IMG/VR virus record: IMGVR_UViG_3300045125_000168
Span: 172,431-236,430 of that record
Length of the DNA: 64,000 bases
Reading direction: 5' to 3' (one strand)
Shown: positions 3,988-40,422 of the stretch, one piece after another
How the letters are laid out: every line of letters begins with the position of its first letter
Numbering within the stretch: the first letter of the stretch is position 1
Made by a program: the position numbers and the translations under genes
The notes under the pieces: generated by a model
The model's input: the letters and a program-made list of their open reading frames with translations, nothing else
Databases searched by the model: none
What the model was told of the DNA's origin: nothing

Positions 3988-4515
3988 CTAAATCTTGATG
4001 AGAGGCCAACTCTGATCGCGGGGATTGACTAAGAGAGGAGTCTCAGGCCATTCGATACCAAGCGCAGGGTCATCCCACCGGAGACCGTCTTCGGCACTTT
4101 TTTCATAAGGGTAATCGACTTTGTACTGAACGATCGCCGTTTCAGACAGAACTAGAAAGCCGTGGGCCAAACCTTTGGGGACATAAAGACTCCAGTGGTT
4201 GTCCTCATTAAGATGAAACCCAGCCCATTTCAGATAGCTCGGGGAGTCAGGTCGAAGGTCCACAATCACGTCATAGATGGAACCCGCAACACACCGCACG
4301 AGTTTCGCCTGAGCCGATCCACCTTTTTGAAAGTGCAAGCCTCGCAAGGTGCCTTTCATGCTTTTGGACTGATTGTCTTGAATCCATCTCTCGTGGATGC
4401 CTGCGGAGCGGAAGTCTGACAGATTGTACGGGACCAAAAAATGTCCTCGGTCATCCGAAAAAACATCAGGCTTAAAGATGCAGGCTTGATAGACAGAAGT
4501 TGTCAACTTTTCCAC
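3988..4515 (-). CDS. rmlC: dTDP-4-dehydrorhamnose 3,5-epimerase
   Basis: DDRGHF, QDNQSKS..GTLRGLHFQ, QAKLVRCVAGSIYDVIVDLRPDSP, VPKGLAHGF, YKVDYPY, WDDPALGIEWP. Confidence 0.95.
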   Translation of the reverse strand: MEKLTTSVYQACIFKPDVFSDDRGHFLVPYNLSDFRSAGIHERWIQDNQSKSMKGTLRGLHFQKGGSAQAKLVRCVAGSIYDVIVDLRPDSPSYLKWAGFHLNEDNHWSLYVPKGLAHGFLVLSETAIVQYKVDYPYEKSAEDGLRWDDPALGIEWPETPLLVNPRDQSWPLIKI

Positions 4516-5396
4516 AAGCGACCCTTTTCTTGGAGTTCCTCTAAGTGTTCGACTAACCTAATCTTCCAATCGACGATATGCTGCGGAGCTAGGGCTTGTG
4601 CCTTGGTGGTGTCCAGGGCCGAGAAGGTCGGACGCAAGGCGCGGGCGCGGTGCTCATCACTACTTAAAAACGGCTTGACTTTCAGATCGATATTCACCAC
4701 GGCACTGAGATAGGACGCAATCACCTGAGCCTGATCGCAGCGCGAGGGCACCGTCGTCGCAGAACCCGAAACATGGATTAGACCCCGAAGCCGAGCGTCA
4801 CTGAGCGCCTGGACAATAAAGCCTGCGACATCCTGAGCGTGAGTTGGAAAGCCAAATTGATCGGATACCACGGGTATAGAGTTTGAGTTCTTTAAATTGC
4901 GGACAATCGCTTCCGGGAACGACGCCCGTGCTCGACCGTACACCCAACTGGTGCGCACCAAAAGAAAAGGTTTTAAACAGTGCCTGAGAAATAGCTCTTC
5001 CCCGAGTAATTTGGTCAGACCATAGACCTGAATCGGCCCCGCTTGGTCGTCCTCACGGTAAGGGATGTGGTGCTCTTTGCCACCAAAGATATAGTCCGTC
5101 GAGATATGCACCACGAGCTTACAGGCTTGAAGCTCCGAACAGACCTTGGCTACCCGTTCGGCAAGAGCCGCGTTGAGTAGGAAGGCTTGGTGCAAATGCT
5201 GCTCGGCCTGATCGACGTTGGTGTAGGCCGCAGCATTGATGACCACTTCAGGGTTCACCGACCGCAGATAGAACTCCAGGGCCTCTAGGTTCGAGAGGTC
5301 ACACTCCTGTCTCGTGGGGGCTAAGACAGGGTAGCCGTGCAAAAGTCGCCTAAGCTCCGTGCCGATCAGCCCTGAGCCACCCAGAATCACGATCAT
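4503..5396 (-). CDS. rmlD: dTDP-4-dehydrorhamnose reductase
   Basis: ILGGSGLIG, VINAAAYTNVDQAE, HISTDYIFGG, YGLTKLLGE (YxxxK), VRTSWVYG, DQFGFPT, RPTFSALD. Confidence 0.95.
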   Translation of the reverse strand: MIVILGGSGLIGTELRRLLHGYPVLAPTRQECDLSNLEALEFYLRSVNPEVVINAAAYTNVDQAEQHLHQAFLLNAALAERVAKVCSELQACKLVVHISTDYIFGGKEHHIPYREDDQAGPIQVYGLTKLLGEELFLRHCLKPFLLVRTSWVYGRARASFPEAIVRNLKNSNSIPVVSDQFGFPTHAQDVAGFIVQALSDARLRGLIHVSGSATTVPSRCDQAQVIASYLSAVVNIDLKVKPFLSSDEHRARALRPTFSALDTTKAQALAPQHIVDWKIRLVEHLEELQEKGRLWKS

Positions 5397-5417
5397 GTCG
5401 AACCTCGCTTGGATTGC

Positions 5418-5456
5418 TTGACAAACATCTTAGCTTGCTTTTAATTTGTAGACAAA
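5418..5456. promoter_or_regulatory. Overlapping divergent sigma70-like promoters between rmlD and NUDIX
   Basis: Plus strand TTGACA-17-TTAATT; minus strand TTGTCT-17-TAAGAT; located in the gap between divergent genes. Confidence 0.55.
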
Positions 5457-5550
5457 TCGCTAAAGCTACTTTGTGTACGGTAAAAAGGTGTTCTCATGGA
5501 GGGCACCTTTTTTGTCCCAAAAGATTCAACACGACCTAGAGGAGTCTTTC

Positions 5551-6041
5551 ATGCAGACCTTCCTGAAACGTGTTGCTGATAGATATAGTGTCGTGGCTGA
5601 GATTGGCTCGGGCAAACACGCCCTGACAACCGACGAGAGCGGGAAGTTTTGGGGGAACGCAGGTGCAGGGGGAGTGTTTTGGGCTAAGGAGACGGGCCGT
5701 ATCCTTCTAGCGTACCGCAGCGCCTTGGTGAATGAGCCGCACACTTGGGGTGTGTGGGGTGGGGCCGTGGACAAGGGCGAATCGCCAGAAGATACCGTGA
5801 GACGAGAAATCAAAGAAGAGACCAAGTACGCTGGGGCCTATCAACTCAAGCCGCTCTACGTCTACCAAAACGGCAACTTTCGTTATCACAATTTTCTTAT
5901 TACCGTGCCAAAAGAGTTTGACCCGATCCTCTGCTGGGAAACCGAAGACTTTGGATGGTTTGACTTAGGGGCTTTCCTAAGCCGCTGCACTTCGGTCTCA
6001 AAGCTCTTTTGCCGCACTTAGAAAAAGAAATCAAAAGGTGA
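5551..6041 (+). CDS. NUDIX hydrolase
   Basis: Nudix box GGAVDKGESPEDTVRREIKEET; the last ~20 codons need a frameshift (FPKPLHFGLKALLPHLEKEIKR*). Confidence 0.9.
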
Positions 6042-6046
6042 CCCCT

Positions 6047-6637
6047 ATGTTGTACAGCTTCCTTGAACAGGTATCGGCAAAGTACGCCGTGATTGCTGAA
6101 CCCACCCTGACCCTGTGGCATGGTGGTAACCTGGAGTTTTCCTCGGAAAGCATCTCACATCGGGGTGGTAGATGGGAGCACGGTCCTGGCCTTTATCTCA
6201 CCACGCACTATGATACAGCAAAAAAATATGCCAAAGGGTCTCGCAAGCTCTATCAAGTTGTCGTTCGGGAGGGAAAAGATCTTTCCGACGTGAACTTACC
6301 GATCGATGCTGTTCATGCTTTTATAGATGAGTATTTTATTCGAGCGCGTAAGCGAGACTTGTTAGCGCGAATCGAAAAGCATGTGGTGAATAACAAAATC
6401 AACGCCGAGACTTTTTTGAATATTACGATCAATGAAAATGGCATCAGAAACACGGATACCGATCGGTTGAGAAATTTTTTAGTCCAGCAAGGAGCCGACT
6501 ATCTGGTTGTGGATAACCCTTTTGGTTGGGGCGAAAGAATGCTTGTGCTTTTCAACATGAAAAACATGGTTAGTAAGAAAAGAATAACGCCAAAAGACAC
6601 TATTGAAGTGTTTGATCTGCCGAAAGAGTTTGCCTAA
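6047..6637 (+). CDS. ADP-ribosyltransferase-fold protein (H-Y clade-like)
   Basis: LWHGG...HGPGLYLTTHYDTAKKYA...LYQV matches the HG / G.G.Y.T / A..YA signature of ART-fold phage proteins. Confidence 0.65.
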   Translation: MLYSFLEQVSAKYAVIAEPTLTLWHGGNLEFSSESISHRGGRWEHGPGLYLTTHYDTAKKYAKGSRKLYQVVVREGKDLSDVNLPIDAVHAFIDEYFIRARKRDLLARIEKHVVNNKINAETFLNITINENGIRNTDTDRLRNFLVQQGADYLVVDNPFGWGERMLVLFNMKNMVSKKRITPKDTIEVFDLPKEFA

Positions 6638-6665
6638 TTTCGCAGATGATCTTTTTTGCGGTCCC

Positions 6666-8521
6666 TTAGTCCTCTGCGGCCTCGGGTTTTACCAGGATCT
6701 TCTTGATCTCGTCGGCGGCTTCGTTGATAAAATCCTCGTCATCAACGTCGATAGCGTAAAGTGTCCGCTCTTCATCTTCGTCCTCGACTTTATAAACGTA
6801 CTTGATAACCCAACCATTACCGTCATGTTCAGGTTCGATGATCTCCGTGATGTTATCCTGCTCAATTTTTTCTTTGATATTGTCCTCTAGCTCGGACTCT
6901 AGTTGACCTTTTAAAAGATCGCGGACGGTTTCGTTTAACTTATCTTCGTCGATAACTAGAGCGAGACCAGCATCAACCTCAAAGTAAACATAGCCACTTC
7001 TCACAGATCCGCGTGATAGGTGTCTATTCACTTTATCTTGTTGCTCTTCCGAGAGGCTTTCCCACTCTTCTGCAAGGTCTTCTGGTAACTCCGTTTCTGT
7101 TTCACCTTGATGGTAATAGGCGAGAGCATAGTTTGGTGGATAGGACTCTTCATAAGTTTCAACCTGACAGCACTTAAAGAGACTTTCTTTTCTAACACAT
7201 CCAAGACGTATCGGACTTTATCTTCGACATCGCTATCCACTTTATCTAAAATTTGCCTTTCAGCTAGATCGTTAAAACTCTCTTCCAATATATATTCATA
7301 CTCTCCGAGCCAGTCTTCACTAGAATAGTGTTCTTCTTCTCCTTCAATATATTCATCAATTCTCTGAGCCAAATCCTCCAGATCAACCCCTGATGGAGCC
7401 AATTCAGGACGTTTTTCGATCAGCTTATCTTTTAAACCCTCGTCTAAGTCTGAGATCCTAAAATTGTTTTGAGCCGCGTACCCGCCCCCTTTGAGCTTGG
7501 TGATTTTGTCATCCTCTAAGAGCTTGACGATATAAGGATGCAGGTTCTCTTTGGGCTTCTGGTTGCTAAACCCCTTCATTTCGCCAAGAGAGCCATCGGA
7601 GTTCCAAATAAAGGTCGCGTGGGGCTTCCACATTTTTTTGCCTTTTTTGGTCGTAATCGGCTCGCGCAAAGAGAGGATTCTTTGTCCCTTCCTGGCTGAA
7701 GGCACGTTGCCGCAGTGACGCATGGCGGCTCCCTCTTTCTCACACCCAGCACGGTCCAAAAGATGCCACTGCCAACCATCTTCAAACTTAAGGAAGGTCT
7801 TGTCGGCCCCTTGCTCAACCAAGCGGGCTTTTTCTTTTTGCAAAGACTCTGACTTTTCCGTGAGACTTTTAAGGTCTTCAAGCAGCTTATCGGACTTTTG
7901 GTCCTTAAATGTATAATTCAGAACAGGCTGATAATTATTGACCTCAGCGTTGCCAAGATAGTGGGTGATGTCAGTGAGCAGTTGGTCGATGTCTGAGGAC
8001 TTTAAGGGATCTGGTGGCTCTTTACCTTGAAAGGCGGGCCGAGTGCCCCGTGCCTTCTTTAAGAACCACACGATCCGATCCTCTCTTTTGAGATTCTTGA
8101 TCGACTTAGCAATAAGAGCATCCCAATACTCCGGTTGGTCCAACCGATTGGAACCTGGATTCTCGTAGAACGGTTTCAGCATCATCTTCAGCCGTGGCTT
8201 GCGACTAGCTAGGACTTCAATTCTTTGCAAAAACTCAAGTTCATTTGGATTTTCCTTTTTTGCAGCTTGCGGCTTGAGTAGAAGAGGTTCAATTTGCTTC
8301 TTCACGTCTCGAAGGAACTTTTTGTCATCTAACGGGATTTCAAAAAGGACTTTTTCTGCACCATCAACTTTGTAGTTGAGTTGCCAGGATTCTACATAGT
8401 CTTCATTTTCTCGCTCATTCGGACCGTAAATTTTACTTATCTTCTCCGATTTAATTTTCTTTTTGATCGTGGGCATCTCATCTGCATCGGCATCTCCTGG
8501 CAACTTTTGGGATTCATTCAT
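6666..8521 (-). CDS. PcfJ-like domain protein with an acidic C-terminus (ORFs 7028-8569 and 6666-7031 joined)
   Basis: EKEGAAMRHCGNV...ILSLR...PHATF...GEMKGFSNQKP. A frame change near 7190 gives continuous ...QDKVNRHLSRGSV into the downstream ORF. Confidence 0.65.
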
Positions 8522-8525
8522 AATC

Positions 8526-8945
8526 TTACTTTGGAAGCCTAACCATCTCAGCGGACCCCCGCAAAACAAACCCGTGGCGTCCGTAGAATTTCTTGAGCCT
8601 GCCTAGTGGAGTGCTCCCTTGGCGTCGTGGTCCCACACCGACATGAAGCTGCAAGACCACTTGGTACTTGTCAGCAAGCTCCGTCAGGTATCGGAGAGCC
8701 TCAGTCCCCGCACCTGAGCCTTTCTCAGCGGCACTGAGCCAGGAGATATAGACCGTGGGCTTGGTCCTCTCCTTCGTCTCAAGATCTAAAAAGGCACCGC
8801 CCTTGGAGGTCTGCAAAGCGTACCCCAGACCTCGGAAGTAACCCTTGGCCTTGGTTTTGAACTCGTCTACCAGCTTTTGCGCTGGGGCATCCTCGGCACA
8901 TAACACGGGATATTTGCGCTGCACGGAAGAAAAAACATGCCGCAT
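8526..8945 (-). CDS. GNAT-family acetyltransferase-like protein
   Basis: Motif A-like EKGSGAGTEALRYLTELAD and motif B-like RLKKFYGRHGFV. Confidence 0.75.
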   Translation of the reverse strand: MRHVFSSVQRKYPVLCAEDAPAQKLVDEFKTKAKGYFRGLGYALQTSKGGAFLDLETKERTKPTVYISWLSAAEKGSGAGTEALRYLTELADKYQVVLQLHVGVGPRRQGSTPLGRLKKFYGRHGFVLRGSAEMVRLPK

Positions 8946-9060
8946 CCTCTGTAGTCTCGTGAGCTAGATAAATCTTGCTCAAACGACTTCGTGAGGTGCA
9001 AGTTGCATTTTGTCTTTGTTCATATTATATCATCATTCGGTCCAAGGGGAGACAACCATC

Positions 9061-9275
9061 ATGGTCGAAAAATGGATAGGCATCAAAGAGATCGCGGAGC
9101 ACCTGGGCATTTCCGTGGTGACGATCTATAGATGGGTTGAAAATGGAAAAATCCCTTGCCACAGGGTCGGCAAACTCTGGAAGTTCAAACCTTCAGAGGT
9201 CGATGCCTGGGTGAGCAGCGGGCAGGCTTCGGGAACGAGTAAGACGAAAAAGAAAAAGAAGAAAAAAGCTCTAAA
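9061..9275 (+). CDS. Excisionase/MerR-type helix-turn-helix DNA-binding protein
   Basis: IGIKEIAEHLGISVVTIYRWVENGKIPCHRVGKLWKFKPSEVDAWV; stop position uncertain in the A-rich tail. Confidence 0.85.
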
Positions 9276-9278
9276 TAA

Positions 9279-9752
9279 TTATTTTACCTTAAAACCTTCA
9301 CCCATCATCTCTTCTTTGAGAATTTCAAGCATATTGTCAGCAGCATAGTCGATCTCCGGGTTCACAATACCGTCTGCGTTTTTCTTTTCACCCGTTTCGA
9401 TATTGGTCGTAAGATCACCCACCCGCGTAATTTTTATACCTCGGGCCGAACCGTCCTCACACTTATAGGTGATCGAAACGGTGAAAACCTTGTCGTTCAC
9501 CTTTTTCAGTTTCGCATCGACCTTGCACTCGACACCCGCATCCTGAAAAACTTTGGTCACGTCTTTGGCAAACGTATCCAACTTTTTGTCCGAAAACGTC
9601 ATGCCGTGGGCAAAGGTGCTAAAAAGTCCTGTTCCGACGAGAACAGTGACCGTTTTTTTCAACTTATTCAAAAAGTCAAATTTGGCTTCAATCCTAGAAC
9701 AATAGGAATAGGAGATTTTTTTGGCTTGGACTTTTTGAATATAACTGGCCAC
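9279..9752 (-). CDS. Hypothetical protein
   Basis: 157-aa ORF beginning MASYIQKVQAKK; no family recognised. Confidence 0.55.
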   Translation of the reverse strand: MASYIQKVQAKKISYSYCSRIEAKFDFLNKLKKTVTVLVGTGLFSTFAHGMTFSDKKLDTFAKDVTKVFQDAGVECKVDAKLKKVNDKVFTVSITYKCEDGSARGIKITRVGDLTTNIETGEKKNADGIVNPEIDYAADNMLEILKEEMMGEGFKVK

Positions 9753-9779
9753 TTGAAATCTCCTTCGATTGCCGCTGAA

Positions 9780-10514
9780 TTATCTGGAGCCGATTTTTTC
9801 CGCAATCTCAAAGAAGTTAGAACCATCCTTTTTCAGTAAAGGTATCTTGCTACGATCAATCCGCCACATCTGTGATGGCATCAGGATGCCTTCATGCGCG
9901 ATGTTACCGTACTCATCTATAAGCTCAAGTTTCTGCTTGTCTGAAAGCAAAGGAAGAAGGATCTTTCCTGCTTTTATCCAAGCATCATAACACCCTTGAA
10001 TAACTTCTTCGAGAAGAGTGGCGTTGTATTCTTCAACAGGTTCTACTTCAAGGTAGTCTTCCGCTAAATCTCTGAGCCACTTCCTCTTTTTCTTATCGAA
10101 GGCATCACGCGCAGCTTCACCGATCTGATCCTCGTCAGGATGGATATTCTGTAGTTCTTTACCAGAAATAACAAACATGAATCCATAACGACCGCGTTTC
10201 TTTATCAAATCATATATGTATTCACTGTTAGTTCCTGCTACTGCCGCACCGAGAGCATAATGAAGTGCATAGCCGACATTTTTGCTGATATATACCCTGT
10301 CATCTACTGCTCGGCTAAAACCTTTAGTGCGTGACATATTTGGTTTGATGCCATGCTTCCATATTTTTTGCGCTTTTCTCTCGGTGGTGGTCCCATGGTA
10401 ATAAAAAGCGTTTTTTATTGCGTCATGTGGCAAGGCACTTTCGCAAACATCAACGTCTTCGTTGAGTGAATATTTGGCCAATACTTTTGTGAAAAAGTTC
10501 ACAAAATACTCCAT
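9780..10514 (-). CDS. ADP-ribosyltransferase-fold protein
   Basis: FYYHGTT...IWKHGIKP...RVYIS...YALHYA...PDEDQ, an HGT / VY / A..YA ART-like pattern. Confidence 0.55.
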   Translation of the reverse strand: MEYFVNFFTKVLAKYSLNEDVDVCESALPHDAIKNAFYYHGTTTERKAQKIWKHGIKPNMSRTKGFSRAVDDRVYISKNVGYALHYALGAAVAGTNSEYIYDLIKKRGRYGFMFVISGKELQNIHPDEDQIGEAARDAFDKKKRKWLRDLAEDYLEVEPVEEYNATLLEEVIQGCYDAWIKAGKILLPLLSDKQKLELIDEYGNIAHEGILMPSQMWRIDRSKIPLLKKDGSNFFEIAEKIGSR

Positions 10515-10538
10515 GAAATTTGTATACCAGGAAAGATC

Positions 10539-11051
10539 CTACTTCGACTTCATGATATAACGAGTCTGCACTGTACCCGGTAAGACTATGACCTCTTTTT
10601 CTTCGAGGACATCCTGCCGCAAAGCACTGTCAATGCCAGAGACTCTCGTTATATCGACAAGTATTAATGATGGAGGAACTATGGCTTCCAGAACAATACC
10701 CTTCGTATGTGACTTAATATATCCACCAGAGTATGGGAAAAAGGCGAAACTCCGGGCTGCGTCTAGATCTTTGGACCAAGATGAAAGCTGGTCCGAGTGC
10801 AAAGAGAAGCTCTCACCTAACTCCAGTTTTTTGCCTGCTAAAGCTCGGATTAGTTTTTCAGGAGTTTTGTAATTACCTACCGAGATACCGCGATATAGCT
10901 TAAGAGAACGCTTGGGACTGGCTTCTTTTAAGCTCTCAATGATGTCAGGAGATGGTGGATCTTTGATATCAGAAATCCATTCTTCCAGCCATTCAATGGC
11001 ATCATACCCCGGCCAAGTTTTTGCGATGATTTGTTTTAAAAAACTTTTCAT
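10539..11051 (-). CDS. R-S-E clade ADP-ribosyltransferase-like protein
   Basis: LYRGI (Arg), SSWSKDLDAARSFA (Ser motif), EEKEVIV (ExE). Confidence 0.7.
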   Translation of the reverse strand: MKSFLKQIIAKTWPGYDAIEWLEEWISDIKDPPSPDIIESLKEASPKRSLKLYRGISVGNYKTPEKLIRALAGKKLELGESFSLHSDQLSSWSKDLDAARSFAFFPYSGGYIKSHTKGIVLEAIVPPSLILVDITRVSGIDSALRQDVLEEKEVIVLPGTVQTRYIMKSK

Positions 11052-11057
11052 GTTTAT

Positions 11058-11862
11058 CTAAACCTCAAAAATACCAGAGTTGATGCGATTCCGCAGAAAC
11101 GTCGGCTGGGCTTTCAACGGAACTCGTCTCAAAAAGTCTACACCGGAACATAAACTATAAGACAATATTCCGTCGTGAATAGATCCAGGAGGATACTTCA
11201 CAGGCTTGTTGCCGTTGCTGATTTGTCCGGTGATAGAGTTGATGAAGCTGGAAACCCAGGCTCCCATGGAGTATCCGCGACGTTGCCCGCGCTCGATCTT
11301 GTTTGCTAGTGTGGGATCTTTTGTCGGCAATAACCGAGGAGCACATAGATCTTCCACACGTCCCAACCTGGAACCTTGCGCAAGGTTGCGTCGAAGTGAA
11401 TGCCTTTGGCCTTGGTGAAGTCGCGGTTATCGTGATCGGCAAAAGTCGGTTTACCACTGAATGTTTGGTAAATAAATTTTCCGAAGCGTGGGTCAAAGTA
11501 CGAAATCTCAGAATATGGAAAACAGTGCAAGTTGCGATTGGGGTACTCTACTGTTACGATCGGAACTTCTGTAAACAAGTAATCGTTTATATTTGCACTG
11601 ATCTGATAGGTTTCACTCGCGCCCTTGAGCCAAGAATAGTCGATGGCATGACCGTTGACTTTAGCTACACACTTCTTGGTATCTTTGTCTTCGATCTTAC
11701 GGAGGCGTTCCTTGGCGACTTCTTTTTTTGAGGAAACTCTTGAGGTGCGGCATCAGCGTAAACCTTAAACCGTCCTTCGTGATGACGGGGTAGGCTTAGA
11801 TGCGCGTGTGTGGGAAACCGCATACTTTGGTCCTTTTTTAGACTTCTAAAAGGTCGGAGCAC
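11058..11862 (-). CDS. Prohead (capsid maturation) protease, assemblin-like; frameshifted
   Basis: Three fragments join as ...PNRN...F...TFSGKPTFADHDN..AKGIHFDA...VLLG..DPTLANKIERG..GYSMG, the His and Ser-Met-Gly layout of large-phage head proteases. Confidence 0.75.
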
Positions 11863-11965
11863 GATGTTCTATTTGATGAATCTTATAGACAATTCGGGGT
11901 ACTAAAGCGTGTGCTAAACACCCTTGTAGTGCTTAACCTTTTAGAAGCGTCTTTTGGCCTGATTC

Positions 11966-12319
11966 CTAGCAGAGGGTACCAACGTCTGGGATTTTATCTT
12001 CACCATCGTCCTCATCGTCATCTTCTTCATCATCAAAGACTTTTCGTTCCTTGCGGATTGTATACACGGCAGAAACTAGCTGGTAATAAGCCTCTTCAAG
12101 ATCGTTTCTCTTACTGCCGTGAAGGGCATTGTATAATAGGAGGACGTCATTGAGGCTACATGAGTAGAAATTAAGCTCTCGCAGAGCATCGAGCAGATAA
12201 TCGACCTCTTCTTCCGAGAGGCCATTCTCGTGACAAAAAGTTGCGATTTTGAGTTCCGCGCTATCGCTCATTTCATCATAACGACGAAGAGCAGCTTCTT
12301 TCGGGTCGAGTATCGTCAT
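11966..12319 (-). CDS. Acidic hypothetical protein
   Basis: 117-aa ORF with an acidic tail; its start overlaps the upstream stop. Confidence 0.55.
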   Translation of the reverse strand: MTILDPKEAALRRYDEMSDSAELKIATFCHENGLSEEEVDYLLDALRELNFYSCSLNDVLLLYNALHGSKRNDLEEAYYQLVSAVYTIRKERKVFDDEEDDDEDDGEDKIPDVGTLC

Positions 12320-13109
12320 GCTAAAACCTCGCGGTAGTGAAGCGTCAGTTGGGGATTTGTCACAGGTTGAGCTAGAGGACTCAGGCGCACGGCTAAAAGT
12401 TCGGTGCCTGCTGGGAAGTAGGTTGGAGCGAAGCTCTCACTTGAAAGTTGGACCTCACGGGTGACCGGATCGATCAACTCGAAGGCAATTCCAGCCGAGC
12501 CTTCGAGCTTGGTGACCAGAAAGGGAGTTGGGAAAACCAAAGAGCCCATCTCAACTTTTTTAGCCGAAGCGATCCCCTCTTTTTTCCATTCCTTGGTGAT
12601 GACACTAACCGAGACCCAGAGATCAGAGGCTGGGTCATGAAAGAAAAGTCCACCCCCTCGAATACAAGGGTCTGGTAAGGATCAGGGTTAGGTGGAAGCA
12701 GAGAGGGGTCGGTAATGGTTTCCCAGGCGAGACTGACTCGCGCCCGCCCATGACTCTCTTGGTCTTCACGAGATTCGACTTTGAAGTTGCCAACAAAGTT
12801 GAGGGATGAAGTTTTATCGACCTTAACGACATAGTTTTCTTCAAGCCCAATGACCCCTGCTTCCATCTCAGGGTATCGAATGATTTTAAGAACTTTTCTT
12901 CGTTCAAGGTCGAGAACTTCAGCTAGTACAGCACGGAAATCCCGGTATTCAAGCTCAACATCTGTGTTAGGTGGGAGGGTGATGGTTCGAGACGCAAGGT
13001 CTTGCTTCTTGTCGATACCAACATCCCCAGGGATTCTTAGCTTGAATGCCTGCTTGAGCAGGTTACGGATAACCCCTGTGCTAACTACAGTTGTGAGCTT
13101 GTGTGACAT
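12316..13109 (-). CDS. Hypothetical protein, possibly structural; two fragments
   Basis: ORFs 12474-13109 and 12316-12549 overlap in different frames. Confidence 0.5.
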
Positions 13110-13112
13110 ACG

Positions 13113-13595
13113 TTAGATTTTCTTTTTCTTTTTGGGTGCGGGTGCTGCCTCCACAGGGGCTGGTGCAGCAACAGGCGCTGGTTTTGGTGGAGGAATCTGA
13201 TCGACGATAAACTCTAGTTGGAGCAGATCATCCACGGTGATGGAAGTCATATCTCCGAGTTCATCGAGAAGCACATACGGGATGTCTATCTCCATATCGA
13301 GGAGTTCGCGCATATCGCGGTTAAAAAGTTCTTTGTTGGCATCAGTAATAGAAAACTGAGTGTAAAGCATTCCGCGTTCATCGCGCTTCTCTTCACAGAT
13401 CGCGTTGCCGTTTGCATCTTTATCAGCATAAAAACGCGCTTTCTCTGAGCGCATTTCTTCGAAGATTTTGGTCTCGTCACGAACTTTAGACACGACCTGC
13501 CTGAGCTTATAGCTGGTGCGGATGGGCAAGTGCAGGCCCGTGAGCTTATTCAGACTCTTTTGAAAACTCATGTTCACGATCTTTTCTAGTTTCAC
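13113..13595 (-). CDS. DUF1617-like phage protein
   Basis: LNKL..LHLPIRTSYKL...E.KIFEEMR....YADKDANG...F..DM.ELLDMEIDI pattern; lies directly downstream of a fibre-like gene. Confidence 0.55.
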   Translation of the reverse strand: MKLEKIVNMSFQKSLNKLTGLHLPIRTSYKLRQVVSKVRDETKIFEEMRSEKARFYADKDANGNAICEEKRDERGMLYTQFSITDANKELFNRDMRELLDMEIDIPYVLLDELGDMTSITVDDLLQLEFIVDQIPPPKPAPVAAPAPVEAAPAPKKKKKI

Positions 13596-13625
13596 AGTAG
13601 CCTCCTGGTGTTAGATAAGACTAAG

Positions 13626-13649
13626 GTGGTTCCCCTTGCGGGGAACCAC
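13626..13649. terminator. Perfect GC-rich hairpin between genes
   Basis: GTGGTTCCCC-TTGC-GGGGAACCAC; the U-tract is weak, so terminator function is uncertain. Confidence 0.5.
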
Positions 13650-13657
13650 AGAAAAAA

Positions 13658-15622
13658 TTAGGCGACTTTGATATACGTTACACGGATCACGTCACCAGAA
13701 GCTAGTTCTTCTGGTTGCCCAAGTGCAACGCTACCTGCGAAAGTCAAGCGGGTGATTCCACCGACCAAGGACACGGAATAGTCAGACCCTGCGTGCAAGG
13801 CAAGACGATCTACGAAGGCACAGATGCTAAACTCGTGTGCTTCAAAGGCGAGGTCGATATAGCCTTGCGAGACTTCGGTTGAGGTGAGAGTAAAAACTTC
13901 TTTTTGGTAGTTGTCTGCTAAGTAAGACTTGACTGCGCTGACGCTTGGAGCTTGATCCGTTTCCAGACCGCTCATCGAGTCTACTACGGCAGCGTCTCTA
14001 GCTCTCTCGACCGTAAAATATTCGTTAGAGCCTTCAGCGATATCGCTGGTCGTGAGGATGACTGTTCCTGTGTAGCCGTTGACCGAATCAACCATATCCC
14101 CGTCGTTTAGGATCTGATAAGCCGAGCCATCCCAAATGTAGGATTTGCGGTTACCCTCGTAGTTATCATCGTCAAGGACGATTACCACGTCACCAATTTG
14201 GACCTGATTATCTTCGGTGCCGATAGTCAAGGCATCGCGAGCCGCGATATCAGCAACCACGATGACATCCGTGATCGAGATCGCGGGCAGTTGGTTGGAG
14301 GGAATCAGACCATTGGCGTCGAGGGTGGCAACACCGTTAGCAGCGGCCTTCTCGGATAAGCGGATACGTGCGTCTACACCATCAGCCAACTCATCCAAAG
14401 CGGTTTTAGCAGAAATCAAGGCACCGCTGTACAGCGCAGGTGTTTTTGGGATGTACTGTGCATCGGCCACGGTCGCACCGAGTTTGAGGCGCGTGCCGTT
14501 CAGGGTGTCGGAGCTTTCGGAACGAATGACGTTAGAAAGAATGTAGCCGCAGGAACCGGATTTGTTAAAGGCCGCGTAAGCAGCGCCCGTCCAAAAGGTT
14601 ACATCCGCCAACAAAAGAGCACCGCTGCTTGCGGTCGAGACGAGGCCCGCTACGTTTTCAAAACCGCAGGCAGACAAACTAACCGTTCCACCTGAATGAG
14701 TGATGGAGTGGATACGGGAGCAGTTCACGGCTCTAAAGATACCAGAAGAGATCGAAGATTGGCCGAAGCAGTAAACGTCGTTTAAAACGACTGCGGCACT
14801 GCCTACAGGCGAGCCTTCCATCACGATACCGTTGTTGCTACCGTTGCGAAAGTCATGCCAACGCTGATAAGAGCCTTGGAATTTGATCTTTCCGACAAAC
14901 ACGCAGTTATCGAAGTAGTGACGACCAGCCGATCCGTCGATGGTCATACAGACGTTGGCAGATCCACCAACGGCTTCGATAAAGATGTTGCGCATCTTAA
15001 CGCGGGTGGTCAAAGCACCGGAGATAGTGATCGAACCCACGATCTTGATTGGGATCGCATCGGTGCTGCCAACTTCGGTCATAAGAGTGATTTTGCCACC
15101 CTCTGCCGTGAGAGCACTTTTGCCGTTGGCAAGACGAGTCGCATTTGGATCAAACGTCAAGTTGACCGGGGTCGCGTTGTTGCCGTATTGCGGGGAATCC
15201 GATTGCTTGATGATAACCACAAAGTCGGAATTGGCGTTACCATACATATCCGACAAATAAGCGGCATCAATACCAGCCTGAATCGTTTTATAAGGACGAT
15301 ACAAGGAACCATCAGACGCACCGTGAAGTGTGTCGTCGTAATTTTGATCGACATAGACCACGCGAGTCATGGTCGAGAGGTCGATCAGGTTGGTGATCTC
15401 GTCGTCCACGTATTTTTTACGAGTTAGATCATCATCAGAAGACGGTGTGAATGCGGCTTTTGGAAGGATTTGAAAATCCAAACTGTCTGCCGAAGACAAC
15501 TTAAAAAGGCTAAGATCGCTCCCCTCCGAGTCTTTAGCTACAAGGCTTTGCTCATTGAGCAGGCGGATTTTATCGCCATCAATTGCCTCGTTAAGAACAA
15601 ACTTCTTTTTTAACTGAGTCAT
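13658..15622 (-). CDS. Fibre/spike-like virion protein with a probable beta-helix core
   Basis: VYVD...DGSLYRPYKTIQAGID, repetitive beta-rich core, and fibre modules NGVATLDANGLIPSNQLP and VDSVNGYTGTVILTTSDIAEGSNEYFT. Confidence 0.7.
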   Translation of the reverse strand: MTQLKKKFVLNEAIDGDKIRLLNEQSLVAKDSEGSDLSLFKLSSADSLDFQILPKAAFTPSSDDDLTRKKYVDDEITNLIDLSTMTRVVYVDQNYDDTLHGASDGSLYRPYKTIQAGIDAAYLSDMYGNANSDFVVIIKQSDSPQYGNNATPVNLTFDPNATRLANGKSALTAEGGKITLMTEVGSTDAIPIKIVGSITISGALTTRVKMRNIFIEAVGGSANVCMTIDGSAGRHYFDNCVFVGKIKFQGSYQRWHDFRNGSNNGIVMEGSPVGSAAVVLNDVYCFGQSSISSGIFRAVNCSRIHSITHSGGTVSLSACGFENVAGLVSTASSGALLLADVTFWTGAAYAAFNKSGSCGYILSNVIRSESSDTLNGTRLKLGATVADAQYIPKTPALYSGALISAKTALDELADGVDARIRLSEKAAANGVATLDANGLIPSNQLPAISITDVIVVADIAARDALTIGTEDNQVQIGDVVIVLDDDNYEGNRKSYIWDGSAYQILNDGDMVDSVNGYTGTVILTTSDIAEGSNEYFTVERARDAAVVDSMSGLETDQAPSVSAVKSYLADNYQKEVFTLTSTEVSQGYIDLAFEAHEFSICAFVDRLALHAGSDYSVSLVGGITRLTFAGSVALGQPEELASGDVIRVTYIKVA

Positions 15623-16199: not shown

Positions 16200-17215
16200 T
16201 CATGAGGACAAGCAGTAGGTCAGAAGACCTCTAGCGACTGCCCCAAAAGGATCTTTGGCCATTCTTATTTCAGTGACCTTGAAGGGGAGGGGAGTTTTCT
16301 TTTTGAAACGATTGAGTTCTTCTTCCCAAAGGTCGCGGAAACCTTTGAGGCTTGCTGTTCCCCCGGAGAGAATGATCGGAATGGCGTCTGGAAAATCTAG
16401 TTGAGATTTCATCTTGGCCCACTGGGTCACAAGATGTTTGATCTCATAGCGGATCATTTCTTTGTAGTGGAAGAAAAGGGCTGGACCCATCTCGTCATCA
16501 AGCGCATCTGGTTTCATGAGATCAAACTCAGGGTTTTCTTTGAGCTTGAGAATCCGAGCGATGGACGTTCCCACAGAAGCCGCACTATGTTGGTCAATCC
16601 AGTCACCAGACCGAGCTACCGAGAACTCAATCGAAGCGATCAACTTATAGCTTGCCGCCACGTTGACCTGTCCTGCTCCGTGAGAGATAGCAATCCCGCA
16701 GTGGTCTTCGTTCGCGCACTCCGCGTAGACAATGGCCAAGGCTTCGTTCACAGGCTCGGGAACGTAACCCAGGTCTTCGAGGAGGTTGCTAAAAAACCCA
16801 GTGTGCCAGACGTTGTTGGCCTTAGGGTTATCAAGTGGCACTGCTGGGATGGAGAACGCACATTTTTCTTCCCCAAACTCACGGGGTTCACCCAGGAGAG
16901 TTTTTACGAGAGTCGAGATGATGGCTCTACCGTCTTTTCTTCAGGGTTCAGAACCCCAGAAGCCATGGGACGTCGGACTTCTTTGTTCAAGACGCGGGCG
17001 ATGCTGATGGCTTCGTCACCGACGATGTATGCTTTGTTATTGAGCATCACCGCATTAAGAGAACCAGCCGCGAGGCGAGACCTTTGCTCTTCGTCGATTT
17101 CCACAAAAGCGTTGCGAAGTCTTTTCACTTCGACCTCGTTTTTGCCTTCAACGCGAGCAACTAACAGGTTTGATGTTCCCACATCCAAACCAGCACCGAG
17201 GGTGACTTTTGACAT
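16200..17215 (-). CDS. Actin-superfamily ATPase, volactin-like; one frameshift near 16900
   Basis: Phosphate-1 GLDVGTSNL, connect-1 PVNEALA, phosphate-2 GIAISHGAGQVNV, adenosine IILSGGTA, C-terminal DPFGAVARGL. The join reads LNPEEK-DGRAIISTLVKTLLGEP...FSIPAVPLD. Confidence 0.85.
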
Positions 17216-18000: not shown

Positions 18001-19209
18001 TCAGTCTAACAGGCCGTAAAACAAAAGAAGCTGTTGAATATTCGAGCCGATTGGACCACGGCCTTTCTCGGCAAGAAACACGTTATTGGTGCGAAAGCGA
18101 TACGGTCGAGTCGCAATAGCTCCAGCAGTTTGACTGGCTCTTTGCAGGGATTGTTTCGCTTTGCCGACGTTACTATCCAGAAACTCTTTAAAACCACTCA
18201 AAATACTTTCAATATCGGCACCAGGGTTGTAATCGAGCGTCACGGATTGGCCAGAAAAATTGAGGTTGGTCTCCGCATAAAGAATACGCTGGGAAGACAA
18301 GGCCCACCATGCGGAACCTAGAACGATATAGCTTTCAATCGCGGCAGGAAAGCTCGCGGGCGTAAAGTTACTGGGAGGCCAATAGCTATTGACGATATTC
18401 GCGCCCTGCGTCACGGCCTCTAAAATATCTTCATTGGTGTAGGCGTAGACGAGTCCGAGTTTCTTTTGCAGCTTATCGATCAGCATTCGGACACTATTGA
18501 TAAGGTGCATGGTGGTCGTGCCGATCACATGGACCGACTGATGCTCAAACTCAAGCGGACTCGTGGCAGACTCCCGCATGGTCCAAAGGGCTGAGTAAAT
18601 GCCAATCTTGAGAGGGGGAGTGTCGGTGTAATAGATCAAACCCGTCCCGCTCTCAACCTCAGCGATCTTGTCCACGGTAAGGGGGTCGGGCACAGGAAAG
18701 GTGAGGGAGGCGGAGTGCATCAGGGTGTCCGTCCCCTTCATCGATAGGCCGAGAGAAAGCTGGTCTGGTCTTACAAGGTTTTTAAAGAAAAGCCGCACAG
18801 GTTGATTGGCAAAAGTCATCACTTTTTGTAATTCGGGCTCTTGCGCAGGCACTCGGTCTTCCACTACATCAAAGTGGAAGGATGCTTCAAACTGCCTGCC
18901 CTGCTCATCGACCATCATAGCTTGAAGGGCGTATCGTCGGGTCGGGCTGGTGAGTTCGATATTTTTGGGAACCACCCAACCGCACTTCCAAGCTCCAGGC
19001 TGAGGTCCAGCTACAGCGACCCCCTGAGCTACGATGGAACCGGAAGGGCTGAGAATCCGGTAGTTCGGGTAGACTTGAGGGTCACTAGGGGTGACGGGCT
19101 GAGTTTTATTGGTGTCGTAATAAAAATTAAAGAAAAAATATTCTAACCTTCCCCGTGTCAAGACACGAGAGGTCTCTTGGCTTATGGCTTGATACCCTGG
19201 AGCTTGCAT
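18001..19209 (-). CDS. Putative head-tail adaptor/neck protein
   Basis: C-terminal VRMLIDK...NSYWPPSNF...FP...IVLGS...L...NFSGQSVTLDY resembles large-myovirus adaptor proteins; N-terminus is Ig-like. Confidence 0.5.
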   Translation of the reverse strand: MQAPGYQAISQETSRVLTRGRLEYFFFNFYYDTNKTQPVTPSDPQVYPNYRILSPSGSIVAQGVAVAGPQPGAWKCGWVVPKNIELTSPTRRYALQAMMVDEQGRQFEASFHFDVVEDRVPAQEPELQKVMTFANQPVRLFFKNLVRPDQLSLGLSMKGTDTLMHSASLTFPVPDPLTVDKIAEVESGTGLIYYTDTPPLKIGIYSALWTMRESATSPLEFEHQSVHVIGTTTMHLINSVRMLIDKLQKKLGLVYAYTNEDILEAVTQGANIVNSYWPPSNFTPASFPAAIESYIVLGSAWWALSSQRILYAETNLNFSGQSVTLDYNPGADIESILSGFKEFLDSNVGKAKQSLQRASQTAGAIATRPYRFRTNNVFLAEKGRGPIGSNIQQLLLFYGLLD

Positions 19210-27773: not shown

Positions 27774-28243
27774 ATGCTTTTTTTCAACCAAAAAGTCAAA
27801 AGTAAGTATGTCTTAGTTATGGCAGAGTCTGGATCAGAAAAAGAGCAAAATCTGATTAAGGCTCTTAATGCTGTAGCCAAAGAAGCGAAGTTGCACGATC
27901 CAAAGTTCGCTTATTGGGAATGTAACAATTTTTCGAGAGCGGCTCATCGAGCAGCTAAAGAGATGGGTGTAAGTTCTGAAGTATGGTCTTGTGAATTAAA
28001 ATACGAGCGTGGTCTTGGAGAGATCGAGGCTGGAGAGAAGGTGGGTCATACCTTTTGAAAATCGGACATAAGTTCTACGACTACACGGGAAGGCAAGCGA
28101 CTCCCAAAATACCTCCAGCATATGTGGCAGATACGCCCCACAAACTTCATGAAGGTGCGCATAAAGATCCCAATCAAGACTATTACGATCGGGATGGTAG
28201 CGACTTTTGGTACGAAAAAATAACTCAAAAAATGGCTATATGA
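27774..28243 (+). CDS. Papain/transglutaminase-fold protein with a Cys-His-Asp pattern; two fragments
   Basis: WECNNFSRA...GHTF...YDYTGRQ. Confidence 0.5.
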
Positions 28244-28271: not shown

Positions 28272-29434
28272 ATGGGCGGTTTTTTCAAACAGGTGATCGC
28301 TAAATATACTCTTGTGACCTCGGACTTCAAAACGGTCGAGAAAAAGTTTCTTGACCTCGGTGCTGAGAAAGCCAAGGTCAAAGACTATCTCGACCGTTTT
28401 AAGAAATTAAGGGACAGAAATAAGCTCAAAGATGACGAAAAGAACATCGACCTTTGGGGCTCTAAGCCTTTTCAAGAGTTTCAAGAAAGAATTGAAGAGT
28501 TAGAAAAGGCTAAAACCAGGACCGAAAAGAAAAAGGGCAAAGTTGATTTGAGAGAAAACATCCCAGGAGCAAAATTAATTACTGAGAACGAAGAGTGGAC
28601 GGTGTTTGAGATCACGACTAATGAAGCATCCCATAAATTAGGGCAAGGTACGGAGTGGTGTATCAAGCACGATAAAAGTGAACAATGGGATCACTATGAC
28701 AGAAGTAATACGATTTACTTTTTTATTTCAAAGACGAGAGACCAGAAAGACCCCTGGTCTAAACTAGCCCTTCTTATTGACCTTCAAGGAAAGAAAACCT
28801 ACTGGGACCGTCGTAATAAGGCTCATAAAAGGGTGCCAACAGACTTAAAATTACCGAGGTTTAAAGTTATAATTCCAAAGTTTAAGTGGAAGGCCGATAG
28901 TAGCGGAGATATTGATGTATCTGAGGAAGGTCTCACCTCTCTTGAGGGAGCCCCTCAGACGGTCGATAGGAATTTTAATTGCAGAGACAACAAACTCACC
29001 TCTCTTGAGGGAGCGCCTCAAACGGTTGGTAAGGATTTTTATTGCAGCAGCAACCGACTTACCTCTCTGGAAGGAGCGCCTCAAAAAGTTGGTGGTTTTT
29101 TTATATGCAATAGCAACCGACTCACCTCTCTTGAGGGATCGCCTCAAGAGGTTGGTGGGTGCTTTGATTGCAGTGACAACAAACTAACCTCTCTTGCGGG
29201 AGCGCCTCAAAAGGTTGATGGGTATTTTAGTTGCCGCGGCAACCAACTCATATCTCTTGAGGGAGCGCCAAGAGAGGTTGTTGCGAGTTTTGATTGCAGT
29301 AACAACCAACTCACCTCCCTTGAGGGAGCGCCTCAAACGGTTGGTGGGAATTTTTTTGCACCAGAAACGGAAAAAAATTCACTGAGGAAGAAGTCCGTGC
29401 GGTCAGCAAAGTCGGCGGCAAAGTCTATGTTTAG
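28272..29434 (+). CDS. GTxWC-domain plus leucine-rich-repeat protein
   Basis: ASHKLGQGTEWCI...IYFF...K domain followed by 7 LRRs; the true end KFTEEEVRAVSKVGGKVYV* needs an indel in the T-run near 29350. Confidence 0.75.
28932..29360 (+). repeat. Seven tandem 63-bp coding repeats (21-aa LRR, LTSLEGAPQxVggxFxCxxNx)
   Basis: CTCACCTCTCTTGAGGGAGCGCCTCA recurs with a 63-bp period. Confidence 0.9.
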
Positions 29435-29921
29435 CCTCAGGATATGGCTTACTCAAGCGAGATCTTATTTTATCAATAGGTTCATCGATAAAACCCATGC
29501 TTTAACGTCTTCATCTCTTAAGCGTGGTCAGTTCCATGAACTCGACACGCGTATCCTTCACTGCCTTTTCGATTCGCTAGTAGACTACATTGAAAAAGAA
29601 CTCGCTTGGATGCATGTGATTTGCACAGAGGCAAACCCAAAGCGACGTGGTTTTGGTTGGCGTTCGCGTCACGAGGGACTTGCTCATTTGGACTGGGAAA
29701 GTGAGTTGATGGATGACCATGGCCAACCGACCAGTCAGGCTCTTTCAGCGAGAGAGATCAAGGCACTTTATTTGTGGTGGACGGAAGAAAGACCTAAGCG
29801 TCAAGACCCTTTCATGGTCAGTTCTATGGAAAGATTTTTCGCACTTGAGAGACAATTCACTAACGAAGATGGTGAAATGCTCATAAGGTTAATGAAAATA
29901 AGATCTAACCTTTGGACCTAA
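29427..29921 (+). CDS. Conserved phage hypothetical protein, falsely fused to the LRR gene in the ORF track
   Basis: RILHCLFDSLVDYIE...GLAHLDWE...EIKALYLWWT...EMLIRLMKIRSNLWT; sequence style is unrelated to the LRR. Confidence 0.6.
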   Translation: MFSLRIWLTQARSYFINRFIDKTHALTSSSLKRGQFHELDTRILHCLFDSLVDYIEKELAWMHVICTEANPKRRGFGWRSRHEGLAHLDWESELMDDHGQPTSQALSAREIKALYLWWTEERPKRQDPFMVSSMERFFALERQFTNEDGEMLIRLMKIRSNLWT

Positions 29922-32113: not shown

Positions 32114-32199
32114 AAAAGACCGCAAAAATCAGCAACTCCTAAGTCGCTTTTAGAACTGCGCTTCTAAAAACATTTACATTTTTTTTGGAGTTAAAACGC

Positions 32200-34427: not shown

Positions 34428-34438
34428 TTTTTGATTTA

Positions 34439-34474
34439 GATAGCATAAGGGTTTCGGCCCTTATGCTATCTTTC
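34439..34474 (+). terminator. Intrinsic terminator-like hairpin after paralog 1
   Basis: GATAGCATAAGGG-TTTCGG-CCCTTATGCTATC followed by TTT. Confidence 0.75.
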
Positions 34475-34535
34475 CGCCCCTCTTTTGCTCCTAGACCTCT
34501 TTATTAAAACAATAATCCCCTTAAGGAGTATAAAA

Positions 34536-37350: not shown

Positions 37351-37357
37351 TGTCTGT

Positions 37358-37384
37358 GGGGTTCCCCTCAAGGGGAACCCTTTT
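37358..37384 (+). terminator. Intrinsic terminator after paralog 2
   Basis: GGGTTCCCC-TCAA-GGGGAACCC followed by TTTT. Confidence 0.75.
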
Positions 37385-37388
37385 AAAA

Positions 37389-37459
37389 GAAACTATAGAT
37401 ACCTTTCATACGATCATTTCAGTTAAAAACCCGATGAAAGGATTGCGATATGACCGATA
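37389..37459 (+). promoter_or_regulatory. Conserved 5' leader with a stem covering the RBS (copy 1)
   Basis: CCTTTCAT...ATGAAAGG inverted repeat includes AAAGGA; nearly identical to 40352-40422. Confidence 0.6.
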
Positions 37460-40309: not shown

Positions 40310-40322
40310 AGGTATCTATAAA

Positions 40323-40345
40323 CAGGGGCTTTTTTGAAGCCCCTG
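40323..40345 (+). terminator. Hairpin after paralog 3
   Basis: CAGGGGCTT-TTTTG-AAGCCCCTG. Confidence 0.6.
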
Positions 40346-40351
40346 CACAAA

Positions 40352-40422
40352 GAAACTATTGATACCTTTCATACGATAATTTCAGTTAAAAACCCGATGA
40401 AAGGATTGCGATATGACCGATT
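40352..40422 (+). promoter_or_regulatory. Conserved 5' leader with a stem covering the RBS (copy 2)
   Basis: GATACCTTTCATACGAT..TTTCAGTTAAAAACCCGATGAAAGGATTGCGATATG, as upstream of paralog 3. Confidence 0.6.

Follow-up and report, generated by a model that had tools for sequence, protein, structure and literature searches.

The analysed stretch (hereafter the window) comprises 64,000 nucleotides and represents the last 64 kb (positions 172,431 to 236,430) of the 236,430-bp IMG/VR virus record IMGVR_UViG_3300045125_000168, which is labelled as a provirus with an estimated completeness of 87%. A cluster of nine genes, at 5551-11051 of the window, was analysed here, the ends of this interval coinciding exactly with gene ends. 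Five of the nine genes code for a NUDIX hydrolase, three proteins with a predicted ADP-ribosyltransferase (ART) fold, named ART1, ART2 and ART3, and a GNAT-like acetyltransferase, and these five proteins begin with a short N-terminal leader in a strict or a variant form. Of the four ART-like genes identified in the 236-kb record, three lie in the 5.5-kb cluster, together with the record's only NUDIX gene. An initial annotation, made from the letters alone, had listed the same five enzymes and given all of them a common leader; the five identities are well supported by the analyses below, and the common leader holds up as well, in its strict form in three of the proteins and as a variant in the other two. 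Four further genes of the interval, coding for a 121-aa, a 497-aa, an HTH_17 and a 157-aa protein, had not been listed.

As the proteins of the window are also recorded on a 351,605-bp contig, the element carrying them is a huge phage, and the source of the cluster is a huge tailed phage. A head-tail connector-like gene (18001-19209) and a gene with minor-tail and virion-structural matches (13658-15622) lie just upstream of the cluster and on the same strand, several tail-fibre or decoration-like genes are found at 32185-41564, and virion-type genes occur on both sides of the cluster. A DNA search of the region 5000-12000 against cultured phages gave no match.

The NUDIX gene (5551..6021, + strand) opens the cluster, with a GAGGAG upstream of its ATG, and codes for 156 residues, of which residues 1-17 form the leader. 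Its match to Pfam NUDIX (PF00293) reaches 49.5 bits (E 5.7e-13) for a cut-off of 21.1, it also matches phrog_1198 (E 1.9e-21), and the box GX5EX7REUXEEXGU can be read intact in its translation. Against the NCBIfam equivalogs, all scores were far below the cut-offs (e.g. 19.9 vs. 169 for NudE), and no ADP-ribose-specific subfamily was assigned. ADP-ribose pyrophosphatases are marked by a proline about 16 residues after the Nudix box; by eye, no proline is present at +15 or +16 in this protein. ART1 starts 25 nt downstream of the NUDIX gene, in agreement with the initial annotation, which had placed an H-Y-type ART directly after it. This adjacency is not a conserved pair, being found in few of the 46 related loci: the two genes are adjacent in L042 and about 4 kb apart in L040, and three loci have a Nudix box within 1-7 kb. 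In L042 (IMGVR_UViG_3300001605_000195, 9025-11303), the gene right after the ART1 homologue is a NUDIX homologue with 51% identity. Also in L042, an 863-aa and a 648-aa neighbour look alike by eye, and a 295-aa neighbour has a GNAT-like C-terminus (weak tblastn match, E 6e-4).

ART1 (6047..6637, + strand; 196 aa, leader at residues 1-18) remains on its own below the Pfam cut-offs, with 23.8 vs. 32.2 bits for DUF3990 (E 3.9e-5) and 20.4 vs. 31.2 bits for ART-PolyVal (E 9.6e-4). It has 256 homologues, some of them with a precomputed PF13151 assignment, and among the 30 homologues that were aligned with it, 27 match DUF3990 (E <= 0.01), 13 ART-PolyVal and three PARP. By sequence, ART1 is thus classed as a fringe member of DUF3990/ART-PolyVal. 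In this alignment (A2), H25, G26, G27 and Y50 never vary, Y61 and E163 hardly do, and the Y50-x10-Y61 spacing is present. The AlphaFold2 (AF2) model (pLDDT 89.5) places H25 in the strand 20-27, Y50 in the strand 49-52 and E163 just before the strand 164-168. In an exhaustive comparison with the PDB (VIA), the top match of this model is 9k3a chain B, with a Z of 9.6 over 160 of the 196 residues at 12-16% identity, followed at Z 5-6 by cholix toxin, diphtheria toxin, tankyrase, PARPs, 6kyf, RES, NatT and ParT; ranks 2-7 and most of the top 32 entries are ARTs. Foldseek likewise returned 9k3a chain B first (E 2.4e-4) and then 6kyf (E 4.8e-3, probability 0.99). The latter carries only the title 'anti-CRISPR protein' in the PDB and is AcrIF11, an anti-CRISPR that acts by ADP-ribosylation. 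Judged on its model, ART1 combines the fold and the motifs of an H-Y-E/D ADP-ribosyltransferase. Sequence searches against solved structures, run with single sequences and with profiles of A2 and A3 (the ART3 alignment), found no ART, and it was fold comparison alone that retrieved them. No match to ART1 was found in cultured phages by tblastn.

The structure 9k3a is that of the pre-ejectosome of cyanophage A4, and its chain B is a solved ejection protein located inside the capsid, in which the ART1-like domain spans residues ~959-1605. From the residue numbering, this chain must be gp27, which belongs to the outer layer of the A4 pre-ejectosome. The paper describing it makes no mention of ADP-ribosylation or of a similarity to ARTs (PMC12002296), and the model comparison suggests that this ejection protein contains an unrecognised ART-like domain. 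The same match raises the question of whether at least ART1 might be a structural, non-catalytic module of ART fold that belongs to an ejection or inner-capsid complex. Such a role would agree with a pre-ejectosome protein being clearly the top solved match (Z 9.6 vs. <=6.0 for enzymes) and with the lack of any described ART activity in the A4 paper, but we regard it as improbable: the putative catalytic residues are conserved throughout 30 diverse homologues (H25 and Y50 without exception, E163 nearly so) on the expected predicted strands, and most homologues match the Pfam ART clan.

ART2 (9780..10514, - strand; 244 aa, leader at residues 1-19) has no Pfam, PHROG or NCBIfam assignment. It has 33 homologues, and in alignment A1, H40 and T42 (within Y-Y-H-G-T), Y75 and Y86 (Y-x10-Y), D127-E128-D129 and a C-terminal GSNFF are invariant. 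With the AF2 model (pLDDT 89.4), the leading Foldseek matches are all ARTs, though weak ones (E 4e-3 and above; pertussis S1, CARDS, TreX/TreTu, cholera toxin, Arr and KptA), and in VIA at least 47 of the top 50 entries are of ART fold, at Z 4-6.8 (KptA 6.8, pertussis S1 6.5, TreX 6.3, DarT 5.9). Each Z is middling, and the fold call is made because the matches come almost exclusively from a single fold. ART2 is accordingly modelled as an H-Y-(D/E) ADP-ribosyltransferase-fold protein, with D127, E128 and D129 as candidates for the catalytic acid. A profile-profile comparison of ART1 with ART2 was not significant, hence the two are treated as distinct families. Among cultured phages, ART2 has a match in Tunturiibacter phage Tunturi_5 only, a jumbo phage whose 853-aa gp205 contains an ART2-family domain inside a multidomain protein ending in a GNAT domain; a second H-Y-like segment and a ParB-like motif can be seen in gp205 by eye.

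As for ART3 (10539..11051, - strand; 170 aa, variant leader at residues 1-20), it has no Pfam match, and a word search found nothing, whereas an exhaustive HMMER search found 16 relatives. Two of the ART3 matches, P0163 and P0166, were rejected as spurious, being long proteins with Pfam matches mostly to coiled-coil or repeat families. The alignment with 12 relatives (A3) shows invariant Y53, R54, G55, S91 and W92 and a near-invariant E153, which fits the R, S-x-S, [QE]-x-E signature through Y-R-G (R54), S-S-W-S (S91) and E-K-E (E153). The neighbours of its ESM Atlas model (pTM 0.81) are DRAT, ADPrib_exo_Tox and ART clusters (TM by query 0.57-0.66), including Mu-F and portal fusions. On motifs and model together, ART3 is predicted to be an R-S-E ADP-ribosyltransferase of the Alt/VIP2/C3/DRAT-like kind, which agrees with the R-S-ExE ART of the initial annotation. 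The Pfam family ADPrib_exo_Tox was not found in the 236-kb record. One of the relatives of ART3, P0157, has a GNAT domain (Pfam E 3.5e-8) fused upstream of a leader-like segment and the ART3 domain. Profile hidden Markov models built on A1, A2 and A3 revealed no paralogues elsewhere in the genome.

The fifth enzyme is the 139-aa GNAT-like protein (8526..8945, - strand; variant leader at residues 1-18), for which no Pfam match was obtained at E <= 1. Its nearest neighbours in the ESM Atlas are GNAT clusters by both feature (scores of 0.94-0.96) and structure (TM 0.58-0.74 to Acetyltransf_1/7/10 clusters), for an Atlas model with a pLDDT of only 0.70. A G-S-G-A-G stretch is visible, the acetyl-CoA motif A being R/Q-x-x-G-x-G/A, and there is a weak match to phrog_10691 (E 1e-5), a very long profile of 3925 positions. 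No BLAST similarity was found to the GNAT domains of P0157 or of Tunturi_5 gp205. This protein is likely a GNAT on the strength of its Atlas neighbours, and it is the least secure of the five identities.

The leaders of these enzymes are detachable, amphipathic peptides 17-20 residues long and, once aligned on their K/R-Y pair, share the core [FL]-x3-[VIL]-x2-[KR]-Y. Three to seven residues past this core, there is usually a hydrophobic-A/x-E: V-A-E in NUDIX, I-A-E in ART1, C-A-E in the GNAT-like protein, L-N-E in ART2 and A-I-E in ART3. The strict core is found in NUDIX, ART1 and ART2; in the GNAT-like protein, the F is shifted by one residue, and ART3 has K-T instead of K-Y. A DNA repeat or a shared 5' untranslated region was ruled out as the origin of the leader, the nucleotides not being conserved, and the leader is therefore taken as a peptide signal. 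In the AF2 models it forms a short helix of its own, predicted with less confidence than the domain that follows (residues 5-12 in ART1, with block means of 67; residues 7-14 in ART2, with block means of 46-49). Across the 97,254 ORF (open reading frame) residues of the genome, the strict motif occurs nine times, six of them immediately after a start codon, and a looser core gives about nine genuine N-terminal matches on unrelated families. Counting variants, the leader is found on about 12 proteins of this phage that have nothing else in common. They include several small proteins and, outside the cluster, a 549-aa leucine-rich-repeat (LRR) protein (28272..29921, + strand) with LRR_4 and internalin-like matches, as well as a 94-aa protein (27774..28058, + strand) without a Pfam match, in which the core stands right after the ATG.

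Two observations made outside the window also concern the motif. Near G000:C1 129,700 (- strand), the strict motif lies some 20 residues short of the C-terminal end of a 205-aa ORF instead of at its N-terminus, which could be due to chance, to a fused module boundary or to a frame change. The fourth ART-like gene of the record is a 224-aa ORF with H-G-T and Y-L-A-S motifs, ART-PolyVal-like (PF18760, E 5e-4) and devoid of a leader of its own. It is overlapped over 4 nt by a leader-bearing 128-aa gene (both within G000:C1:26424-27481, + strand; locus L053:1034-2091), and the two may constitute a pair made of a leader-carrying partner and an enzyme.

The leader recurs in related loci. In L007, the closest of them, it heads seven to eight neighbouring genes, among which are the ART1 orthologue, a protein with a true PARP domain (E 2.5e-22) and one resembling ART-PolyVal (E 4e-6). 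L002 has two leader-tagged ART genes side by side in a tail/baseplate block, five genes upstream of Baseplate_J. In several fused relatives, the leader is found at a domain junction: P0003 (leader, domain, leader, ART2), P0037, P0123 and P0157 (GNAT, leader, ART3).

Other ART1 homologues have a different N-terminus, and there the likeness is with phage T4. The WHGG motif lies within the first 60 residues in 114 of 120 homologues, where it is preceded by a median of ~21 residues. At least 27 of these N-terminal extensions resemble the starts of the T4 internal proteins IPI, IPII and IPIII, MKT[YF][QK]EF, and a large group of homologues begins with M-x-[ST]-[YF]-K-[QE]-F or a closely similar sequence. 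In the T4 record, IPII and IPIII begin with M-K-T-Y-Q-E-F-I-A-E and IPI with M-K-T-F-K-E-F, which is the T4 capsid-targeting sequence (CTS). The same I-A-E closes the leader of ART1 in the window and that of T4 IPII and IPIII. The site of the T4 prohead protease is L/I-x-E. In L042, four consecutive genes, the NUDIX homologue included, start with M-[KR]-x-x-E-[FI], again resembling the T4 CTS. A third type was found in the cultured 440-kb Salicola phage SCTP-2 (L055, MF360958, 26.5-42.5 kb of the record), where nine genes of a 40-kb stretch share an MK[VI]KHITQYLFES-like N-terminus. These comparisons of N-termini suggest that huge phages have lineage-specific leader dialects. In the literature, the CTS of T4 is the only conserved part of otherwise diverse injected defence proteins (PMC3012670), and in the giant phage SPN3US, N-terminal propeptides of 20-24 residues, and longer, are removed after A-x-E (PMC10052503).

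The initial annotation had not drawn what is probably the meaning of the leader, by analogy with these systems, namely a capsid-targeting-like propeptide by which the enzymes would be loaded and injected. The explanation that we retain as the best one, and hold to be probable if only narrowly so, is that the five enzymes are packaged in the head, trimmed by a protease and injected with the DNA, the leader being a lineage-specific capsid-targeting propeptide. The observations behind it are the folds, the conserved catalytic motifs, the occurrence of the leader irrespective of protein family, its position at junctions in fusions and the virion-gene context; packaging, cleavage, injection, targets and substrates are what we infer from them. 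The leader peptide would carry each enzyme into the assembling prohead, the prohead protease would cut it off after the glutamate, and the mature enzymes would be ejected with the DNA into the new host. There, in the first minutes of infection, the ARTs would ADP-ribosylate and the GNAT acetylate host macromolecules, and the NUDIX enzyme would hydrolyse an NDP-X compound, in the service of takeover and/or counter-defence. Published work predicts that ART, Nudix and GNAT domains are packaged in virions or commonly delivered by them (PMC5512222, PMC9503650), and the packaging reading is in line with these predictions and with the precedent of T4 Alt. The proposal of the initial annotation, a set of enzymes that would write and trim modifications for host takeover or for countering defences, likewise fits this comparative work.

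Several points weigh against packaging. A search of the 236-kb record for Peptidase_S77, Peptidase_S78, Gp23 and Portal_T4 was negative; since this record is incomplete (87%, with a parent contig of 351 kb), the absence of a prohead protease from the phage is not established. Only a subgroup of phages has the leader, and most of the 43 IMG/VR loci that bear ART1 but are more distant lack it, which is why it is considered lineage-specific. In the case of ART3, conservation extends from the domain to the residues that directly follow the leader, so that its N-terminus may be an element of the fold. The E is not at a fixed distance from the core, and in some proteins bearing the leader it is missing. 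Finally, the NUDIX protein matches no curated subfamily, with ADP-ribose, NAD or NAD-capped RNA as possible substrates.

In an alternative reading, the enzymes are ordinary, unpackaged cytoplasmic proteins of takeover or counter-defence, made during infection like T4 ModA and ModB, and the shared helix serves for something else, for instance binding to a partner or chaperone common to them, targeting to the membrane or a phage compartment, or controlled turnover. Besides the missing protease and T4-like head genes, the location of NUDIX and ART1 on the strand opposite the structural genes speaks for it, as do the HTH regulator within the cluster (HTH_17, 9010..9348, + strand; 112 aa, Pfam E 2.1e-16, excisionase/MerR-like, phrog_66) and the occurrence of the ART1 homologue among metabolic or auxiliary genes in L006 and L008. 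It accounts less well for the leader at domain junctions in fused relatives, for the T4-CTS-like N-termini of ART1 homologues, for a capsid-internal ejection protein as the top structural match of ART1, and for leader-tagged ART genes adjoining baseplate genes in L002. All in all, we consider it rather unlikely.

The provirus label of the record invites another interpretation, in which the ARTs are the toxins of defence or toxin-immunity modules carried by a prophage, acting in abortive infection or superinfection exclusion, with the small neighbouring ORFs as immunity proteins. ART folds are common among toxins, DarT, RES and ParT being among the structural matches reported above, the NUDIX domain and the N-terminal region of ART1 gave weak PADLOC matches to candidate systems, and an acidic 121-aa ORF lies nearby. 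However, the PADLOC matches are at the domain level only, neither a defence system of known architecture nor an antidote of the Macro or DarG type was found, phage structural genes flank the cluster on both sides, the leader is also present on non-toxins (the LRR protein and NUDIX), and the relatives are huge-phage contigs. Of the readings weighed here, this one appears the most improbable.

Compared with known systems, the head-packaging reading has a close counterpart in phage T4, in which IPI, IPII, IPIII and Alt, whose CTS is cut by the gp21 prohead protease, are, as here, unrelated effectors sharing only a short N-terminal peptide that ends with hydrophobic-x-E. Alt is itself an R-S-E ART that is packaged and injected, and in the T4 genome nudE is located beside ipII and ipIII. 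The leader of the present phage differs by its F-x3-V-x2-K-Y core and by its length (17-20 aa vs. ~10), H-Y-type ARTs and the GNAT are not T4 proteins, no S77 protease or T4-type head genes were found in the record, and packaging of the present enzymes is putative. Polyvalent proteins (Iyer et al. 2017, PMC5512222), where the H-Y-D ARTs of ART-PolyVal have a neighbouring GNAT, offer the same repertoire of domains, i.e. ARTs, GNAT and, in relatives, ParB-like; the difference is that the domains are separate genes here, each with its own leader, whereas fusions occur in relatives (Tunturi_5 gp205, P0157).

A virion-associated setting is also that of the NAD+/ADP-ribose systems of myoviruses (Iyer et al. 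2022, PMC9503650), in which genes for ART, Nudix and related domains beside morphogenesis genes are predicted to be packaged and deployed early, as proposed here. The cue for packaging was, in that survey, MuF/portal fusions and gene neighbourhoods, and it is a shared N-terminal peptide in the present case; also, the NUDIX protein of the cluster belongs to no assigned ADP-ribose clade. The A4 ejection protein, held inside the capsid and ejected, is the top structural match of ART1, but the A4 chain is a podovirus protein of >1,700 residues with one matching domain and is not described as an ART. The 6kyf anti-CRISPR is, like ART1, a small stand-alone phage protein of ART fold (VIA Z 5.7, 10-15% identity), and no sign of a CRISPR target was seen here.

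The kind of system is thus known from T4 Alt, internal proteins and polyvalent proteins. What is new is a distinct leader tagging a whole set of effectors in a lineage of uncultivated huge phages, two ART families for which Pfam has no model (ART2 and ART3), and the structural resemblance of ART1 to a pre-ejectosome protein of solved structure. That the F-x3-[VI]-x2-[KR]-Y...A-E peptide is a previously undescribed signal for capsid targeting and cleavage in this lineage is a conjecture that we rate a little short of an even chance. Were it correct, sequence alone would suffice to list all the injected effectors (about 12 proteins here, among them three ARTs, NUDIX, GNAT and the LRR protein), a listing that usually needs virion proteomics of cultured phages. 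The presence of the leader at junctions would then imply that the head protease splits polyvalent proteins into individual enzymes, and the tag at the domain boundaries of fused relatives would link the CTS of T4 with polyvalent proteins. Each huge-phage lineage would have its own leader dialect: MKT[YF][QK]EF in the T4-like type, MK[VI]KHITQYLFES in the SCTP-2 type, and the present one. The tag could also be used for filling phage heads with cargo, a use to which the T4 CTS has already been put.

The remaining genes of the cluster complete its layout. The 121-aa (6666..7031), 497-aa (7028..8521) and GNAT-like genes, all on the - strand, are tightly packed, with a 4-nt overlap followed by a 4-nt gap, and face the NUDIX-ART1 unit on the + strand; with such convergent transcription units, the cluster does not form one operon. 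Scans for consensus promoters and terminators yielded counts at or below the shuffled expectation, and no Rfam family or tRNA was found. Neither the 121-aa nor the 497-aa protein matches Pfam, PHROG or NCBIfam. The former, which sits between ART1 and the 497-aa gene, has no leader, a pI of 4.2 and 35 D+E residues; that it may be an inhibitor or a DNA mimic is only a guess. The 497-aa protein has 40% identity over residues 238-395 with gene 31 of SCTP-2, its sole match in cultured phages, and that gene carries the shared leader of SCTP-2. On the - strand, the 157-aa protein (9279..9752), without a family match, has a weak leader-like N-terminus followed by a hydrophobic stretch.

Around the cluster, a 915-nt stretch (11052-11965) directly upstream of ART3, with no convincing ORF, Rfam match or consensus promoter, parts the ART genes from the same-strand upstream genes at 11966-15622, one of which is virion-structural-like. 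Further upstream, a 213-aa ORF (16200-16841, - strand) matches positions 132-318 of the 321 positions of the Pfam profile Volactin (PF25216; E 1.6e-33), which we take to be an actin-like family. The N-terminal half of the profile is not in the same ORF, and the gene may be split, truncated or wrongly started. At the other end, immediately upstream of the cluster, two ORFs on the - strand (3988-5396) resemble, by eye only, a dTDP-sugar epimerase and a reductase (rmlC/rmlD-like), a pair that may represent a sugar-nucleotide module in a phage.

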